Sequence record: NC_028899.1
Strand: one strand, 5' to 3'
DNA length: 64,000 bases
A program made the position numbers and the translations under genes. Shown in pieces: positions 3,431 through 63,839 of the stretch. Positions within the stretch are counted from its first letter, which is position 1; every line of letters starts with the position of its first letter. The notes under the pieces are model-generated. The model made no database searches, had not been told where the DNA came from, and worked only from the letters and a program-made list of their open reading frames with translations.

Positions 3431-3763
3431 TCAGTGATAGGTTGCTTCATTCTTGATACTTTCGAACACAACCCGCATTTCGGGATGCACTCGATAAAAC
3501 ACGCACGGCAGTTCCGTCTTCGTGGCGAAGATGCCATGCAGCAACATGTCGCGCAGCACATCCTCGACCATCTGGAGCGTATGCTTGCTGTCGTTTTGGT
3601 AGACCGTTCTGGCGATCCATTCCAACGTCAGCTGATAACCTTCCGGCATCAGAATGAAGTGATGGAAGATTCGCATCTTCGCATCCCAGTGCGGCTCGGG
3701 TTCTTTTGCAACGATGACTTTTTCGGCCAACTGGGTACGCCAGATTTGTTTTGCGCTCAGCAT
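3431..3763 (-). CDS. Winged-helix-like small protein (array member 4)
   Basis: 110 aa. 'LTLEWIARTV...MVEDVLRDMLLHGIFATKTELPCVFYRVHPEMRVVFE'. Confidence 0.65.
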   Translation of the reverse strand: MLSAKQIWRTQLAEKVIVAKEPEPHWDAKMRIFHHFILMPEGYQLTLEWIARTVYQNDSKHTLQMVEDVLRDMLLHGIFATKTELPCVFYRVHPEMRVVFESIKNEATYH

Positions 3764-3772
3764 TTCCGGTCC

Positions 3773-4321
3773 TTATTCAAAAGCCTTCTGTTGTTTGAGG
3801 ATGGTGTAAAGATCCATAGCTTCCTTCTTGGTCAGCTTGGACACACCAACATAGATGTGTTCGAGATCTTTCTGAGTCTCGAACAACCACAAAACGTTCT
3901 TGTAAAACTGATACAGGTCTTGAAGCGCAACCTTGTTGCCTTTGACCTGGATGTCCGTCGAGAACAGAAGATGTTTTCCACGCTCACCAGTATAGGTCGA
4001 CATCAAAGACACGAATTCCAGCGTCGGTTGATACCGTATCTGCTGTTCGCCTGAGGCATCAGCGAGAGGTGTCCACTGACTCAAGACAGATGCCTGTAGG
4101 AGATCGCTGATAGCCGTTTCAATCTCCGTTGTGGAAAAGTTGGTCTTACCGCGAATCTTTTCCAAGACTCGAATCTTCGCATGTCCTTCTGGAAATCTGC
4201 TGGGCTCACAGACTACTTGAACAACGCATTCCTCAACCGTCAGATCCTGGCCTAGTTTCACCGGCGCGCAGGCGACTGCAGCTAGTTTCAGAATGGTTTT
4301 GTTGAATTTATCGAGTGCCAT
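3773..4321 (-). CDS. Winged-helix-like protein with C-terminal KG module (array member 3)
   Basis: 182 aa. 'EIETAISDLLQASVLSQW...IRYQPTLEFVSLM', then C-terminal 'IQVKGNKVALQDLYQFY'. Confidence 0.6.
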   Translation of the reverse strand: MALDKFNKTILKLAAVACAPVKLGQDLTVEECVVQVVCEPSRFPEGHAKIRVLEKIRGKTNFSTTEIETAISDLLQASVLSQWTPLADASGEQQIRYQPTLEFVSLMSTYTGERGKHLLFSTDIQVKGNKVALQDLYQFYKNVLWLFETQKDLEHIYVGVSKLTKKEAMDLYTILKQQKAFE

Positions 4322-59323: not shown

Positions 59324-60052
59324 TCAATCGGTGATGTACTGCACGATGTTCACGACGGACTGCTTGACTGAATCCAGATCACGCGTTGCATCGACGGTGA
59401 AGAGCGGACCGGCTTCCAGCAACGTACGTTGGCTGAATTGAGTACGGAAGTTCTGGATGAGGTTTTCGAAGAACTCGTCGGGCTTCGATTCGAATGCATC
59501 CTTCTCGCCCGATGTCGCGGTCACGCGTTCTTCTACCCGTGCGCGTGAAGTTGCCAGATCGATGTTCAAGAAGATCGTCGCATAGCCCTTGATCTGGTTG
59601 TAAAGCCATGCACGCTTGTCAAGCGGATAAGCGGCCAGGATGTTGGGCAGGTTCAGATGGTAGTCAAACATCTGATCACAGAGCTTCTTAGGGATTCCCT
59701 GAGTGTAGTGCTGGTACACCCACGTCGTATCGTTCCAACGGTCACTGACGACCACCTGACCAGCCAGAAGGGCAGGAATGATCGACTCGGTCAGTACACG
59801 TCGGCGCAGATACAGAATACACGACAGAACTGCCGGCATCGGGATACGTTGATGGATCCATGCATCGCGCATGAACGACGCTTCTTCGTCTTTCGGATAC
59901 GCTGCTACGAGCGTATTCGGAATCCCTTTCTTCGACAGGTAGTCGCTGATGAATTGGGAAATGCTGCTCTTGCCACTACCATCGATTCCTTCGATGGTCC
60001 AGAAACGATTCTGGTTCGCACCGATTTCTTTAGCATCCGGAAAGAAAGCCAC
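59324..60052 (-). CDS. tmk: Thymidylate kinase
   Basis: 242 aa. 'TIEGIDGSGKSS' P-loop, 'VVVSDRWNDTTWVYQ', 'TIFLNID'. Confidence 0.9.
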   Translation of the reverse strand: MAFFPDAKEIGANQNRFWTIEGIDGSGKSSISQFISDYLSKKGIPNTLVAAYPKDEEASFMRDAWIHQRIPMPAVLSCILYLRRRVLTESIIPALLAGQVVVSDRWNDTTWVYQHYTQGIPKKLCDQMFDYHLNLPNILAAYPLDKRAWLYNQIKGYATIFLNIDLATSRARVEERVTATSGEKDAFESKPDEFFENLIQNFRTQFSQRTLLEAGPLFTVDATRDLDSVKQSVVNIVQYITD

Positions 60053-60136
60053 GGTCTTCCTCGCAATTTAGTAAAAAGAAAGCAAAAAAAAAATCCCCAG
60101 TGTTACCTGGGGATTAAGACATGCGCCATCCGAGGC

Positions 60137-60901
60137 TTACACGCGGCGCATGTAAAGGCTCAGAGGCACATAGGACGGATTCACGAAGCGGTACATTGCT
60201 GCACGCGCTTGTTCTTTACGGCGGATGTTATCGGCATAATCCAGCATCGTCGACAACTGTTCATTCGTTTTGGCAATACCCACGTGGATTGCAGCGCCCC
60301 GATCGATCGACCAGTACTGCACGCCCACATTCCCGTTGTCGTAGCAGCGGATCTGCACGCCATCGGGTACGACGAGATCTTCAATCGTCAGCTGGTGATT
60401 GCGGTTGTACTTCACCGGATACCAGAGGTTCTTGTTGACTTCGTCTGTGACGAAGCGCAGGTTGTCGAAGTAATAATTGGCTGCTTCCAGAACCATCGAC
60501 TTGTAGTCGGGGTTATAGAATTCCTTCGACAGTTCCGTACCACTGAAGACACGGATGATCACCTTGCGCGGTCCACGCTGTACTGCCACCATTTTCGACG
60601 GCAGGATGAACACGCCATGGCCGGGAATGACCTTGACGCCTTCTTCCTTCTTGTCGAACAACTGCCGCAGTTTCCCGCGGCCGTTGAATGCCTTCGACTG
60701 CCCCAGCGCCGTATTGTACATACGGAATGCTTCGGGCGTGATGGCGTCATCGACGACCGGAGTGAACAAGTGGTTCTGGCGAATACTGTTGACGCGCCAT
60801 GCCTTCTCGTCACCCCAGTTAATCATGACCAGGTCAGAGTCAATGGGAAACTCGTGACCAACGATACGAACAACATTTTTGCCGACAGAGATTTGCTTCA
60901 T
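60137..60901 (-). CDS. Hypothetical protein
   Basis: 254 aa, AAGGA RBS, GC3-rich. Confidence 0.75.
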   Translation of the reverse strand: MKQISVGKNVVRIVGHEFPIDSDLVMINWGDEKAWRVNSIRQNHLFTPVVDDAITPEAFRMYNTALGQSKAFNGRGKLRQLFDKKEEGVKVIPGHGVFILPSKMVAVQRGPRKVIIRVFSGTELSKEFYNPDYKSMVLEAANYYFDNLRFVTDEVNKNLWYPVKYNRNHQLTIEDLVVPDGVQIRCYDNGNVGVQYWSIDRGAAIHVGIAKTNEQLSTMLDYADNIRRKEQARAAMYRFVNPSYVPLSLYMRRV

Positions 60902-60946
60902 TGTCGATTATTCCTTGCAGATTTTGAAATTGAATACGTCGACGTG

Positions 60947-61675
60947 TTAAACGTCGATTTCCTCGGGGGTTGCTGCTTCCGGGGTTTCCCCCGTTGCTGC
61001 TTTCTGGCGAGCCACAATGATCCGCTTTGCCATCTCGACGGCCACCAGGAAGTGGGCGTGAGAAGTCAGATACGGATTCTTCGGCACCGATACAGTACTC
61101 GCCAAGCGCCGCGGATCGCCAGCCTGCTCATAGTTCTCCAGCGGTTCGGTTTTCTGGTAGGCGTCGATCATCTCCTTGACGGCGGCGATGACCGAATCCA
61201 CCCACACATACTTCATCTTCCATGCGGACTTGTAATACCGCTTGGCGTCTTCTTCGTTGAAGCCGGCGGCCGCGAGGGTCGTCAGGCAGCCTTGCTCGAA
61301 GATTTCGCGCGTGCGCACGGACAGCGGAATCGCGACGATGGTTCGTCCGACTTCCTTTTCATCCTGTTTACGGATGTTGACTCGAAGTTCCCACTCACCG
61401 AGTCGATGGGGTACGCGGCTCCAGCCGTGGAAGAACTGCACCAGGTCTTTCTGGCGTCCTTCTGCGACGATCCGCTCGATCTCTGCGACGGCAGCTTCGT
61501 CAGCCGGCGACACAGAGGGCATGGGGTGCGGTCGCATCGGCGGGCGATGCGCGGTATGGTTATTTCCTCCACGGCTATAAGTTGCCGTATGCGGCCGATG
61601 ACGCTGGCCTTCATGTGACTGGGGCGTGTTTTTCTTGTTGCCGCCGAATCGATGAGTCATGTTGAGATAAGTCAT
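60947..61675 (-). CDS. Hypothetical protein with a disordered His/Arg/Pro-rich N-terminus
   Basis: 242 aa with a GGGAG RBS. Confidence 0.75.
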   Translation of the reverse strand: MTYLNMTHRFGGNKKNTPQSHEGQRHRPHTATYSRGGNNHTAHRPPMRPHPMPSVSPADEAAVAEIERIVAEGRQKDLVQFFHGWSRVPHRLGEWELRVNIRKQDEKEVGRTIVAIPLSVRTREIFEQGCLTTLAAAGFNEEDAKRYYKSAWKMKYVWVDSVIAAVKEMIDAYQKTEPLENYEQAGDPRRLASTVSVPKNPYLTSHAHFLVAVEMAKRIIVARQKAATGETPEAATPEEIDV

Positions 61676-61830: not shown

Positions 61831-61867
61831 CATAGACAAATACCAGATGCCCGAAGGCATCTGGTAT
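61831..61867 (-). terminator. Hairpin + TATG element
   Basis: ATACCAGATGCC-CGAA-GGCATCTGGTAT with CATAG and an A-tract on its left. Confidence 0.8.
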
Positions 61868-61869
61868 CG

Positions 61870-62421
61870 TCATTTCGCTGGCGGCTTTGTAGGAGTCGTC
61901 TGAGACAACTGACGCTCCAGATTCTTGAGGAGGCTGCTTCCTGCCCCGAACAGCTTAGCGGAATGCTTCTTGGCAGAATTAATCACCTTCAAGAAATCCC
62001 TTCGAGGATAATGAATCAGTTCATCGAAGGATAGCCCGAAGATCTCATGAACCCGGTTCTCAGCGAACTGGTCGAGCCGGAAGTCTATCGGATCAACAAC
62101 GGACAAGTCCTCAAGAGGAGAACAGAAGAGCAGAGGCCATGGAACAGCCTCTGTATCCGGCGCATCGTGATTGTAAATACCAAATGCGGTTTCGTACTTC
62201 ATCCGCATGAACAACTCGGCATCTACCACGTTGGGTAGTCTGGCGGTTGTCATGGCATCCAGAATCACGTTTGCCGGATTGTATTGCTTGTCTTCTGCTC
62301 TCACCTTTTCGGGTGCTAGTCCGATGTGCCCTCCAGTGCTCGTGACGTAATCCCAAGCAACTTCTGCTCGACCAGCTGAAAAAAAACCGAAATCGCATCG
62401 ATTGCGATCAGGCGCGGCCAC
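61870..62421 (-). CDS. Conserved phage protein in the -1 frame of the upstream gene; possible frameshift extension
   Basis: Open frame overlaps the upstream gene by 106 nt. C-terminal 'EIFGLSFDELIHYPRRDF'. No clear own RBS. Confidence 0.6.
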   Translation of the reverse strand: MAAPDRNRCDFGFFSAGRAEVAWDYVTSTGGHIGLAPEKVRAEDKQYNPANVILDAMTTARLPNVVDAELFMRMKYETAFGIYNHDAPDTEAVPWPLLFCSPLEDLSVVDPIDFRLDQFAENRVHEIFGLSFDELIHYPRRDFLKVINSAKKHSAKLFGAGSSLLKNLERQLSQTTPTKPPAK

Positions 62422-63839
62422 TTGTCGCCGGACTTGGTGTCCTCGTACTCGTTGACCGAAGTCGTCGCGATGATCGCGACTTGCGTGTTGTTGATGTACT
62501 CACTGATCGCCTTGAAGAACTTCGAGGAGATCTCGTCGGATGCCGACAGGGACGAGAGAACCTTGTCCACGTTTTCGCGCGTGGTATAAAGCTCGCCGTC
62601 TTCTTCGATCGACTTGACGTAGTGCGAATACTGACGCAGACGCGAAGCCTTAGCCAGCTGGCTAATGTACTGCATGCGCTTCTTTTCGTCTGCTTCGGCG
62701 CCCAGTGCTTCATGCACTGCCGCCTGGATCTCGTTGATCCACTTCTCGCCTGAGTCGAAGTACTCACGCAGGCTCGGCGTGTACAGATGCAGCTTCACGC
62801 CATCGCCGATGTCGACAACCGTGTTCTGATTGAAGACAAACTGGTCCTTGTACTCCTTGACCATTTTCACGGTCATGGGCTGCTCGATGCGCTTGACCAT
62901 GTGCGCCAGCTGCTCTTCCTTGAACATCTTGGCGTTCATGAAGAGCGCCTTACGCAGATCGATGATCTGGTTGATTTCCTTGGCCGGCAGCTTGGTGTCT
63001 TCCGTAAAGACTGCACGCGACATCGGGAAGCCGTTCGGATAAACCGACGTAGCGACCGATTGCGCGATCAAGGGCAGATCGTTGATCGTGATGTGATCGA
63101 CGATGTTTTCCTTGGGCAGGTCTTTGACGGTGGTCTCGACCATCGAGGCGAGCCATGCTTCGACGATCGCCTTGGCTGTGAAGACCGAGTTGTTCGCGAA
63201 CATGAGGCCATGCGTTGCACGACCGAGCTTGACCGGCTCGGCGATGACCGCACGCCACAGGCCGATGATGTCGATTTCTTCGAGCGGTTTGACCGTTGCG
63301 TAGAACCCGGAGCCCACCAGCGGAACCTGGACGGGCGAACCCAGGCCCAGACGCGACTTCACCGACAGAACGATACGTTCGGAGCTCATGTTCGAACCAC
63401 GACCGCGGTTCGAGAACTTCGGACGACCGATGTTGATGTTGCTGCCGTTGTAGGTCAGCGCATTGCGCCATTCGGCGTTCGGGTCTGCCAGTGCATCTTC
63501 GAACACGCCATGCGACGGAACCGAACGGAAGCCGTTGAGTAGCGTCTGGTACCAGTTGACGGAGTCTTCGTGAACGTCGACTTCGCCCATCTTGGTTGTC
63601 GCCATGTCGTCGTTCACGCGCGTTGCGGTGTCCGGCAGCAGCGGGATCAGAACGCCCTGGAACTTTTCGACTTGTTCGTCGGTCGCGTCGGACATGAGAG
63701 CGGTTTTGCTCTCGTAGTTTTTGTCTTGCTTGGGCAGCTGTGCGTTCTGCGGGTCGATATTGACCTGCGTCTCTTCCGGCATGACGAGATCCGTTTCGTC
63801 ATGCTGGCTGCCCGGGGTATCTTCCGGTGCGATTGCCAT
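62316..63839 (-). CDS. Conserved phiKZ-like protein (possible baseplate-hub / tail assembly chaperone)
   Basis: 507 aa with an AAGGA RBS. 'GLGSPVQVPLVGSGFY.TVKP', 'I.INDLP.IA...A...YPNGFP'. Confidence 0.7.
   Translation of the reverse strand: MAIAPEDTPGSQHDETDLVMPEETQVNIDPQNAQLPKQDKNYESKTALMSDATDEQVEKFQGVLIPLLPDTATRVNDDMATTKMGEVDVHEDSVNWYQTLLNGFRSVPSHGVFEDALADPNAEWRNALTYNGSNINIGRPKFSNRGRGSNMSSERIVLSVKSRLGLGSPVQVPLVGSGFYATVKPLEEIDIIGLWRAVIAEPVKLGRATHGLMFANNSVFTAKAIVEAWLASMVETTVKDLPKENIVDHITINDLPLIAQSVATSVYPNGFPMSRAVFTEDTKLPAKEINQIIDLRKALFMNAKMFKEEQLAHMVKRIEQPMTVKMVKEYKDQFVFNQNTVVDIGDGVKLHLYTPSLREYFDSGEKWINEIQAAVHEALGAEADEKKRMQYISQLAKASRLRQYSHYVKSIEEDGELYTTRENVDKVLSSLSASDEISSKFFKAISEYINNTQVAIIATTSVNEYEDTKSGDKWPRLIAIDAISVFFQLVEQKLLGITSRALEGTSD
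62379..62387 (-). other. Candidate -1 ribosomal slippery site (G)U_UUU_UUU
   Basis: Codons GTT TTT TTT (V485-F487) of the 507-aa gene, with the -1 frame open to 61870. Confidence 0.45.

Follow-up and report, generated by a model that had tools for sequence, protein, structure and literature searches.

The window analysed here, 64,000 nucleotides of Ralstonia phage RSF1 (NC_028899.1), carries on its minus strand ORF196, the orthologue of phiKZ gp77, followed by the smaller gene ORF195 (Table 1). The assignment of ORF196 to the chimallivirus gp77 family rests on a profile match to phrog_4585 (E = 1.5e-154 over residues 3-506), on 221 phage records and 1,301 representative clusters of the family, and on the conserved gene order gp78-gp77-gp76.4. 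Upstream lie orthologues of phiKZ gp78, gp79 and a virion RNA polymerase subunit, and downstream lie hypothetical proteins and a thymidylate-kinase-like gene. Codons 485-487 of ORF196 read GTT TTT TTT, forming a run of eight T's with 20 sense codons left before the TAG stop. The -1 frame is open from 62421 to the stop at 61870, and a shift at the run would join 487 residues of ORF196 to 169 residues of the -1 frame, giving a protein of 656 aa.

Table 1. Coordinates of genes and sequence features at the ORF196-ORF195 locus of RSF1
Feature	Position (strand)	Description
Upstream gene ORF196	62316..63839 (-)	507 aa; phiKZ gp77 orthologue (phrog_4585); 0-frame product
In-frame slippery heptamer T_TTT_TTT	62379..62385 (-)	Last base of Val485, then Phe486 and Phe487; inside the eight-T run 62379..62386
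Low-variation codons	62355..62390 (-)	Twelve codons (484-495)
Overlap read in both frames	62316..62379 (-)	0-frame tail of ORF196 and first 21-22 codons of the -1 extension
-1-frame extension ORF	61870..62379 (-)	169 codons plus stop; phrog_12109
Stretch between the ORF196 stop and the first ATG of the downstream frame	62254..62315 (-)	Annotated as intergenic in relatives
ORF195 as annotated in GenBank	61870..62304 (-)	GTG start, 144 aa
Candidate 7-bp hairpin	62353..62371 (-)	Starts 7 nt after the run; weak and unproven
Likely terminator closing the operon	61842..61865 (-)	Perfect 10-bp hairpin with a TTCG loop and a T-rich tail, right after the stop of the -1 ORF

A first-pass annotation made from the sequence alone had described this run about 20 codons before the stop, had noted that the -1 frame is open from just upstream of it for about 170 codons, and had proposed a -1 frameshift yielding a fusion of about 655 aa. 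We checked each of these items in the sequence, and the observation is correct. Its statement that the downstream ORF has no convincing start of its own is only partly right for RSF1, as a GTG (the annotated start) lies 12 nt after the ORF196 stop and an ATG (62251..62253) lies 63 nt after it. However, neither has a well-spaced Shine-Dalgarno sequence and neither is conserved in relatives.

Conservation of the run and of the -1 frame

In order to test whether the run and the -1 relation are kept in orthologous gene pairs, as the first-pass annotation had suggested, we compared 36 genomes of nucleus-forming jumbo phages, down to about 20% protein identity; a search of IMG/VR added only one new locus. 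In 35 of the 36 the downstream gene lies in the -1 frame, and that frame is open back through the homologous Phe-Phe codons, although the distance from the run to the stop varies from 34 to 142 nt and the distance from the stop to the annotated start varies from -4 to +218 nt. The probability of this by chance is about 6e-6 for the frame relation and about 1e-25 for the open -1 frames, combined over 12 lineages. The -1 ORF extends for 154-191 codons after the motif in 14 lineages, and its product is homologous across chimallivirus lineages.

A canonical heptamer, T_TTT_TTT or T_TTT_TTC, is present in 30 of the 36 genomes and is identical in nine Chiangmaivirus genomes, while five genomes have an imperfect one (G_TTT_TTT twice, A_TTT_TTT, A_TTT_TTC and T_TTT_TCT). 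The run is T8 in RSF1 and in 15 other sampled genomes, and lineages with T7, T6 and even T5 keep the arrangement, always in the phase required for tandem tRNA re-pairing. Among 24 genomes analysed for codon choice, the first Phe codon is TTT in 24/24 and the second in 19/23, and the preceding codon ends in T in 21/24, although TTC dominates elsewhere in the gene (in RSL2, 0 TTT and 18 TTC). At the protein level, Phe486 and Phe487 are present in 148 and 140 of 149 family proteins, and the 0-frame protein always ends 11-38 residues later, so the short form is kept too. As the Phe-Phe pair lies in a confidently modelled helix (AlphaFold model of ORF196, pLDDT 89.7, pTM 0.89), part of its conservation is a protein constraint.

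Selection at the run and in the downstream frame

Synonymous variation in ORF196 was measured among 12 genomes that share as little as 55% protein identity. It is normal up to codon 483 (0.37 for codons 473-484, after the only upstream in-frame GTG) and essentially absent over codons 484-495, and 0 of 475 windows of the gene are as low. In the overlap, pS is 0.19 against about 0.7 further downstream, and both readings are conserved, although the conserved -1 peptide could partly be a by-product of 0-frame conservation. The supposed intergenic stretch after the 0-frame stop evolves as coding sequence in the downstream frame, with pN/pS of 0.42 in that frame against 0.87 and 1.45 in the other two, and it is always free of frame-breaking indels.

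We next asked whether start codons could account for this coding-type selection. A conserved Gly-His...Phe-Gly block sits 12-32 codons after the motif, while the first ATG, GTG or TTG comes at codon 86 in phiKZ, 69 in Ea35-70, 52 in PCH45, and 50 and 43 in the related loci L030 and L029; in L029 the -1 frame opens only 11 nt before the run. The GTG 105 nt before the ORF196 stop, which would begin a 183-aa ORF, was rejected as a start because synonymous variation between it and the run is normal and because it is absent in L029. The GTG at 62304 and the ATG were likewise rejected as the only starts, since SURPRISE13 has no candidate before +48 and the related loci L028 and L029 lack the ATG. 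Some lineages do have a plausible start of their own (an ATG overlapping the stop in RP12, and an ATG just after the Gly-His block in PA1C, PhiPA3 and 201phi2-1), suggesting that a free downstream protein may also be made.

RNA structure around the run

No conserved 3' stimulatory structure was found. The RSF1 fold downstream of the run has z = -0.6, the median rank against gene background is 0.42 and only 3 of 17 lineages are unusually stable. The candidate hairpin after the run is supported by weak covariation only, with one compensatory pair and two sequences that break a pair, and is not more stable than background. RSF1 has another 7-bp hairpin 4 nt upstream of the run, but this is not conserved either, as codons 475-483 vary freely and the related loci L024 and L026 lack it. 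No terminator lies between the two ORFs, and a strong one follows the second (z = -7.2). The downstream part has lower GC3 (0.57 against 0.77), as expected for a minor product.

A putative recoding unit

Based on these results, we propose that ORF196 and ORF195 form one recoding unit. In this model, most ribosomes read ORF196 to its TAG and make the 507-aa protein, while at the heptamer a fraction slips back one base, the two Phe-tRNAs re-pairing with UUU in the -1 frame, and continues through the overlap, past the 0-frame stop and through ORF195. In the resulting trans-frame protein the last 20 residues of ORF196, most of its C-terminal helix, would be replaced by a flexible linker and a small helical domain, as the predicted structure of the extension has about 30 low-confidence residues followed by such a domain. 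The analysis itself establishes the heptamer, the frame relation, the open frame, the coding-type selection upstream of any start codon and their conservation across the family, whereas the trans-frame product, the occurrence of the shift on the ribosome, its efficiency and the role of the long form are inferred, all of the evidence being comparative. We consider recoding of one kind or the other very likely, and a ribosomal mechanism somewhat more likely than not.

The main alternative is transcriptional slippage, in which the phage or host RNA polymerase would occasionally add one U while copying the run, giving an identical protein. rU:dA hybrids are the weakest, and slippage at A/T runs occurs in bacterial IS elements, Thermus dnaX and Shigella mxiE. 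A transcriptional slippage site is expected to have a long A or T homopolymer, usually of 8-9 or more, whose length rather than phase is conserved. The T8 run of RSF1, its terminator-like layout with the upstream hairpin and the fact that no ribosomal stimulator was found fit this view, and the deposited genome of RTH11 differs in register within the homopolymer from its closest relative, showing that the run is error-prone for some polymerase or for sequencing. On the other hand, the T5-T7 runs of orthologues are short for polymerase slippage, and the conserved phase and the variable upstream hairpin also argue against it, so that this mechanism is disfavoured, although the two are not distinguished. 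A simple sequencing or assembly error, with the two ORFs being one gene or ORF195 a decaying remnant, is effectively refuted, since the same layout recurs in 35 independently sequenced genomes and metagenome contigs from different platforms and laboratories, both the 0-frame tail and the -1 ORF are under purifying selection, and no relative among the 150 best family representatives has a single fused ORF.

It also remains possible, but improbable, that no recoding takes place, and that ORF195 is an ordinary gene translated from its own, possibly non-canonical, start or by termination-reinitiation, the run merely encoding a structurally needed Phe-Phe. All public annotations call two genes, RSF1 has the two candidate starts described above, and none of the 150 best family representatives is a natural fusion, the longer proteins carrying N-terminal extensions. 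This view does not explain the -1 frame in 35 of 36 genomes, the open frame reaching exactly back to the motif, the choice of TTT against codon bias, the coding-type selection and conserved residues upstream of every candidate start, the lack of a usable start for 43 codons in L029 and 85 in phiKZ, or the fact that gene callers give lengths from 107 to 156 aa or no gene at all.

Comparison with known recoded genes

The interpretation offered by the first-pass annotation is partly supported: comparative evidence strongly favours its core inference of a -1 shift at the run, which extends to the whole chimallivirus family, but the likeness to tail-chaperone pairs (lambda G/GT, P2 E/E') is not supported. 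These pairs share with the proposed ORF196-ORF195 unit a -1 shift at a slippery heptamer close to the 3' end of a phage gene, the keeping of both a short and a C-terminally extended product, and conservation by position across very divergent genomes; here this is analogy, not membership. The upstream protein is 507 aa rather than about 130, roughly four times larger, its neighbourhood is an RNA polymerase and helicase block rather than tail tube and tape-measure genes, and its putative slip site encodes a near-invariant Phe-Phe inside a structured helix. Neither piece matched a tail-chaperone family or fold in Pfam, PHROGs, NCBIfam or the PDB, by sequence or structure, and the C-terminal motif of the extension, which the first-pass annotation had likened to chaperone extensions, returned no named hit. 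True homology with these pairs is very unlikely, although the shared logic of a -1 shift near the 3' end adding a C-terminal domain and the weak fold similarity of the upstream protein, described below, to baseplate-hub assembly proteins, another class of tail assembly factor, speak for it.

In phage T7, as proposed here, a U-rich -1 slip site near the end of gene 10A gives a minor, longer isoform (10B) that shares the whole body of the major protein, but the extension in RSF1 is about 169 residues long and is a separately annotated, conserved gene product with its own predicted fold, and the gene is not a capsid gene. Bacterial dnaX (tau/gamma) and IS3-family orfA-orfB use canonical X_XXY_YYZ tandem slippage, and IS3, like the unit proposed here, fuses two overlapping ORFs. 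Their sites have defined stimulators (an upstream Shine-Dalgarno-like element and a 3' hairpin or pseudoknot), none of which is conserved here, and dnaX slippage truncates the protein whereas the shift proposed here would extend it.

Literature searches on PHIKZ077/gp77, on programmed frameshifting in Chimalliviridae, on slippery sequences in jumbo phages and on frameshifting in baseplate hub genes found no report of this arrangement, consistent with the first-pass annotation, which was not aware of one for phiKZ-like phages. The gp77 named in the Goslar, PhiPA3 and PCH45 papers is a different gene. If recoding is confirmed, more than 200 sequenced jumbo-phage genomes, including the models phiKZ, PhiPA3, 201phi2-1 and Goslar, are misannotated at this locus, with inconsistent or impossible starts for the small downstream gene and the long protein missing from every proteome. 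It would add a family-wide recoding event to a core gene of unknown function and novel predicted fold, give a handle on that function through two isoforms with a defined stoichiometry, as in tail chaperones, and offer a natural test of how efficiently U_UUU_UUU shifts without an obvious stimulator. It would also show that near-invariant amino-acid motifs can partly reflect nucleotide-level constraints.

A possible link to baseplate-hub assembly

To understand what the two products may do, we searched both pieces against Pfam, NCBIfam and the PDB by sequence, profile and Foldseek, all without a match; for 17 diverse members of the upstream family, no Pfam hit was obtained at E up to 1, and there was no NCBIfam match. 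The suggestion of the first-pass annotation to compare with gp26/gp51 families did give a lead, but for the upstream protein. The best, although weak, indication is that ORF196 may be an assembly factor for the tail baseplate hub made in two isoforms. Tentatively, and with low probability, an ancient recoding signal may have been fixed in this core gene before the nucleus-forming jumbo phages diversified, making two isoforms of a previously uncharacterised assembly factor, possibly the counterpart of the T4 hub-assembly chaperones, with the long isoform swapping the terminal helix for a tethered helical domain. This would be a second, independently evolved system of a chaperone plus frameshifted extension in tailed phages, working without a conserved RNA stimulator or, alternatively, relying on slippage by the phage's own unusual multisubunit RNA polymerase.

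The lead itself comes from Foldseek hits of the ORF196 model to predicted viral structures named T4-like baseplate hub assembly protein, hub subunit or hub assembly chaperone (E 5e-4 to 1e-2, target-normalised TM 0.37-0.56), the PDB holding no such structure. ORF196 is twice the size of the T4 gp26/gp51 hub assembly chaperones (PMC3004832), no link was found at the sequence level, and the T4 genes are not known to use a frameshift. T4 gp51 is absent from the finished particle, and the 201phi2-1 record marks neighbouring genes, but not this pair, as found in virions by mass spectrometry. Some jumbo-phage records already carry such hub-related names for the orthologue.

A candidate slippery heptamer near the end of RSF1 ORF196

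The stretch analysed corresponds to record positions 124001-188000 of Ralstonia phage RSF1 (genus Chiangmaivirus). The gene carrying the T-run, ORF196, matches phrog_4585 end to end and is the orthologue of phiKZ gp77. Its codons 485-487 read GTT TTT TTT, so that the run of eight T's holds an in-frame T_TTT_TTT heptamer 20 codons before the TAG, with 169 codons of open -1 frame after the motif. The first-pass annotation had reported a U-run about 20 codons before the stop of a 507-aa gene together with an open -1 frame, and this description is accurate. The coordinates of these and of other features mentioned below are collected in the table.

Table. Coordinates of the features considered in this section (RSF1 positions are those of the analysed stretch)
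Feature	Position	Strand	Remarks
ORF196, upstream gene	62316..63839	-	507 aa, ends in TAG
Eight-T run	62379..62386		contains the in-frame heptamer
Open -1 frame	62421 to 61870		
ORF195, downstream ORF	61870-62304		annotated in GenBank from a GTG at 62304
Hairpin upstream of the run	62391-62409	-	7 bp, 4 nt upstream of the T-run
ORF192	59324-60052	-	242 aa
Opposite-strand ORF	59657-61618	+	653 aa
PHIKZ076.4 region of phiKZ	3742-4236 of the phiKZ locus		annotated as 80 aa from the first ATG

In order to understand whether this layout is maintained, we first compared close relatives. Nine Chiangmaivirus genomes at about 82% DNA identity carry the same T8 followed by 26 invariant bases, the stop always lies 71 nt after the first T, and the -1 frame is open for 172-173 codons. 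Six metagenomic relatives with 55-78% protein identity keep the layout, with T8 in four, T7 in one and T6 in one. Their -1-frame peptide after the run stays conserved, including in the relative L026, where the 0 frame stops six bases earlier. Several of them have no ATG, GTG or TTG in that frame until 51-69 nt past the stop, and in L029 the frame opens only 11 nt before the run and no downstream gene was called at all. Gene callers give the downstream protein lengths ranging from 107 to 156 aa.

Dual coding constraint begins at the run

We then tested for selection in 12 genomes. In the stretch between the ORF196 stop and the first ATG, pN/pS is 0.42 in the downstream frame, close to the 0.32 of the ORF body and unlike the 0.87 and 1.45 of the other two frames, while in the overlap pS is 0.19 against about 0.7 elsewhere. 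Along ORF196, the share of identical-residue pairs using different codons is 0.35 overall and 0.37 for codons 473-484, but it is zero or nearly zero for codons 484-495. More specifically, the eleven lowest windows of the gene are centred on residues 484-494, and none of 475 other windows of the same length is as low as the terminal segment. Dual constraint therefore begins at the run, and not at the upstream in-frame GTG.

The arrangement is conserved in distant relatives

The junction was read in 20 further genomes (FLC9, PA1C, phiKZ, PhiPA3, 201phi2-1, RP12, Ea35-70, ChrisDB, SPFM17, Goslar, PCH45, RTH11, LucasX, Xoo-sp14, JM-2012, CR5, Yong XC32, FBKp24, Eowyn, and Psa21) and in the contig L030. 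In every one except RTH11 as deposited, the downstream gene lies in the -1 frame and that frame is open back through the homologous Phe-Phe codons, although the spacing on both sides varies widely. Over all 36 genomes, the heptamer is T_TTT_TTT or T_TTT_TTC in 30, G_TTT_TTT in 2, A_TTT_TTT in 1, A_TTT_TTC in 1, and T_TTT_TCT in 1, the remaining genome being RTH11 with its register difference. The deposited sequence of this Xanthomonas phage has one frameshift in the gp77 orthologue with respect to its closest relative LucasX, which is canonical, so that the annotated 627-aa ORF ends in a non-homologous reading; this is probably a homopolymer-length error or a natural length variant.

Codon choice at the motif runs against genome bias. 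The first Phe codon is TTT in 24 of 24 genomes analysed and the second in 19 of 23, while TTC dominates elsewhere in the same gene. With stop frequencies taken from the -1 frame of each gene body, the chance of the observed open stretches is about 1e-25 over 12 lineages, and 5e-8 for phiKZ alone, where 85 codons lack both stops and canonical starts.

The downstream ORFs, read in their own frame from the motif to the stop, align across lineages and are homologous. They share a Gly-His...Phe-Gly block 12-32 codons after the motif and a conserved helical core near the C-terminus, and the first of these lies upstream of the first canonical start in phiKZ, Ea35-70, PCH45, L030, and L029. The frame of PHIKZ076.4 is open 85 codons further upstream of its annotated start, and that stretch is homologous to the N-terminal part of the downstream proteins of PA1C, PhiPA3, and 201phi2-1.

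The upstream family has 1,301 representative clusters at 50% identity. In an alignment of 149 of them, Phe486 is present in 148 and Phe487 in 140, with 11-38 residues (median 14) following the motif, and none of the 150 best hits is a natural fusion. Both the short tail and the separate-frame extension are therefore maintained, as expected when two products are needed. In the same family, about half of the aligned members (76 of 149) have Cys at five aligned columns, near RSF1 residues 264, 277 and 285 and in an insertion after 463. Four of them, two near residues 277-285 and a CxxC pair in the insertion after residue 463, look like a zinc-binding cluster shortly before the motif, although RSF1 and its clade lack these cysteines.

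Possible mechanism of the shift

The simplest reading is a tandem -1 slippage of the two Phe-tRNAs on U_UUU_UUU. We found, however, no conserved stimulator. The 89 nt after the run fold no better than shuffles (z = -0.6), a 7-bp hairpin 7 nt downstream has one compensatory pair and two breaks, and across 17 lineages the region is not more stable than other windows of the same gene (median rank 0.42). Transcriptional slippage on the T-run would give the same protein and cannot be excluded. The hairpin upstream of the run gives a terminator-like layout in RSF1, but it is not conserved in relatives and synonymous variation there is normal. The persistence of the arrangement with T5-T7 runs and the constant codon phase favour the ribosome. 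All of this evidence is comparative: the layout, its conservation and the selection signatures are shown by sequence comparison, while the efficiency of the shift, its mechanism and the function of the products are inferred.

A strong terminator-like hairpin follows the -1 ORF (z = -7.2) and none separates the two ORFs, so they share a transcript on this evidence. The downstream ORF has clearly lower GC3 (0.57) than the upstream gene (0.77), with similar values in relatives (0.53-0.62), which is consistent with weaker codon adaptation of a minor product.

Full-text searches found no report of recoding at this locus or in Chimalliviridae, and none of the GenBank records read here annotates slippage. 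While the mechanism itself is of a type already known, the gene family and the family-wide conservation are new.

Predicted structures of the two pieces

To understand what the two pieces may be, we analysed predicted structures, always handling the two pieces apart. The upstream protein gives a confident model (pLDDT 89.7, pTM 0.89), in which the motif lies in the C-terminal helix 482-499, so that the long form would lose most of that helix. The model has no PDB match (best E 0.15), and neither the sequence nor the family profile hits any PDB chain. Against predicted viral structures, it first finds its jumbo-phage orthologues and then a series of proteins of about 250 aa named T4-like baseplate hub assembly protein, hub subunit or hub assembly chaperone (E 5e-4 to 1e-2). 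T4 gp26 and gp51 are listed as hub assembly chaperones without solved structures, and gp51 is absent from the finished particle (PMC3004832). As there is no sequence-level support for this link, it is a lead only. A few records, those of Erwinia phage AH06, Klebsiella phage MJ359, and Pseudomonas phage pPa_SNUABM_DT01, already name the gp77 orthologue baseplate protein, baseplate hub or putative baseplate hub assembly protein, in agreement with the weak fold similarity seen here, but we found no published basis for these names.

The extension is modelled with moderate confidence (pLDDT 71), with about 30 low-confidence residues followed by helices, the core at residues 100-140 being near pLDDT 90, and it has no fold or family match. 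The first-pass annotation had interpreted the pair as a candidate programmed -1 frameshift resembling the tail-chaperone G/GT pairs, and this is supported only in part: the comparative data strongly support a shift at the run, but nothing links either piece to the tail-chaperone families.

Further downstream, RSF1 ORF192 has a Walker-A-type motif and its counterpart in the related locus L028 carries a precomputed Pfam Thymidylate_kin hit, suggesting that ORF192 is likely a thymidylate kinase. The 653-aa ORF lies on the strand opposite three annotated genes and is most likely a stop-poor antisense frame of GC-rich coding DNA rather than a gene.
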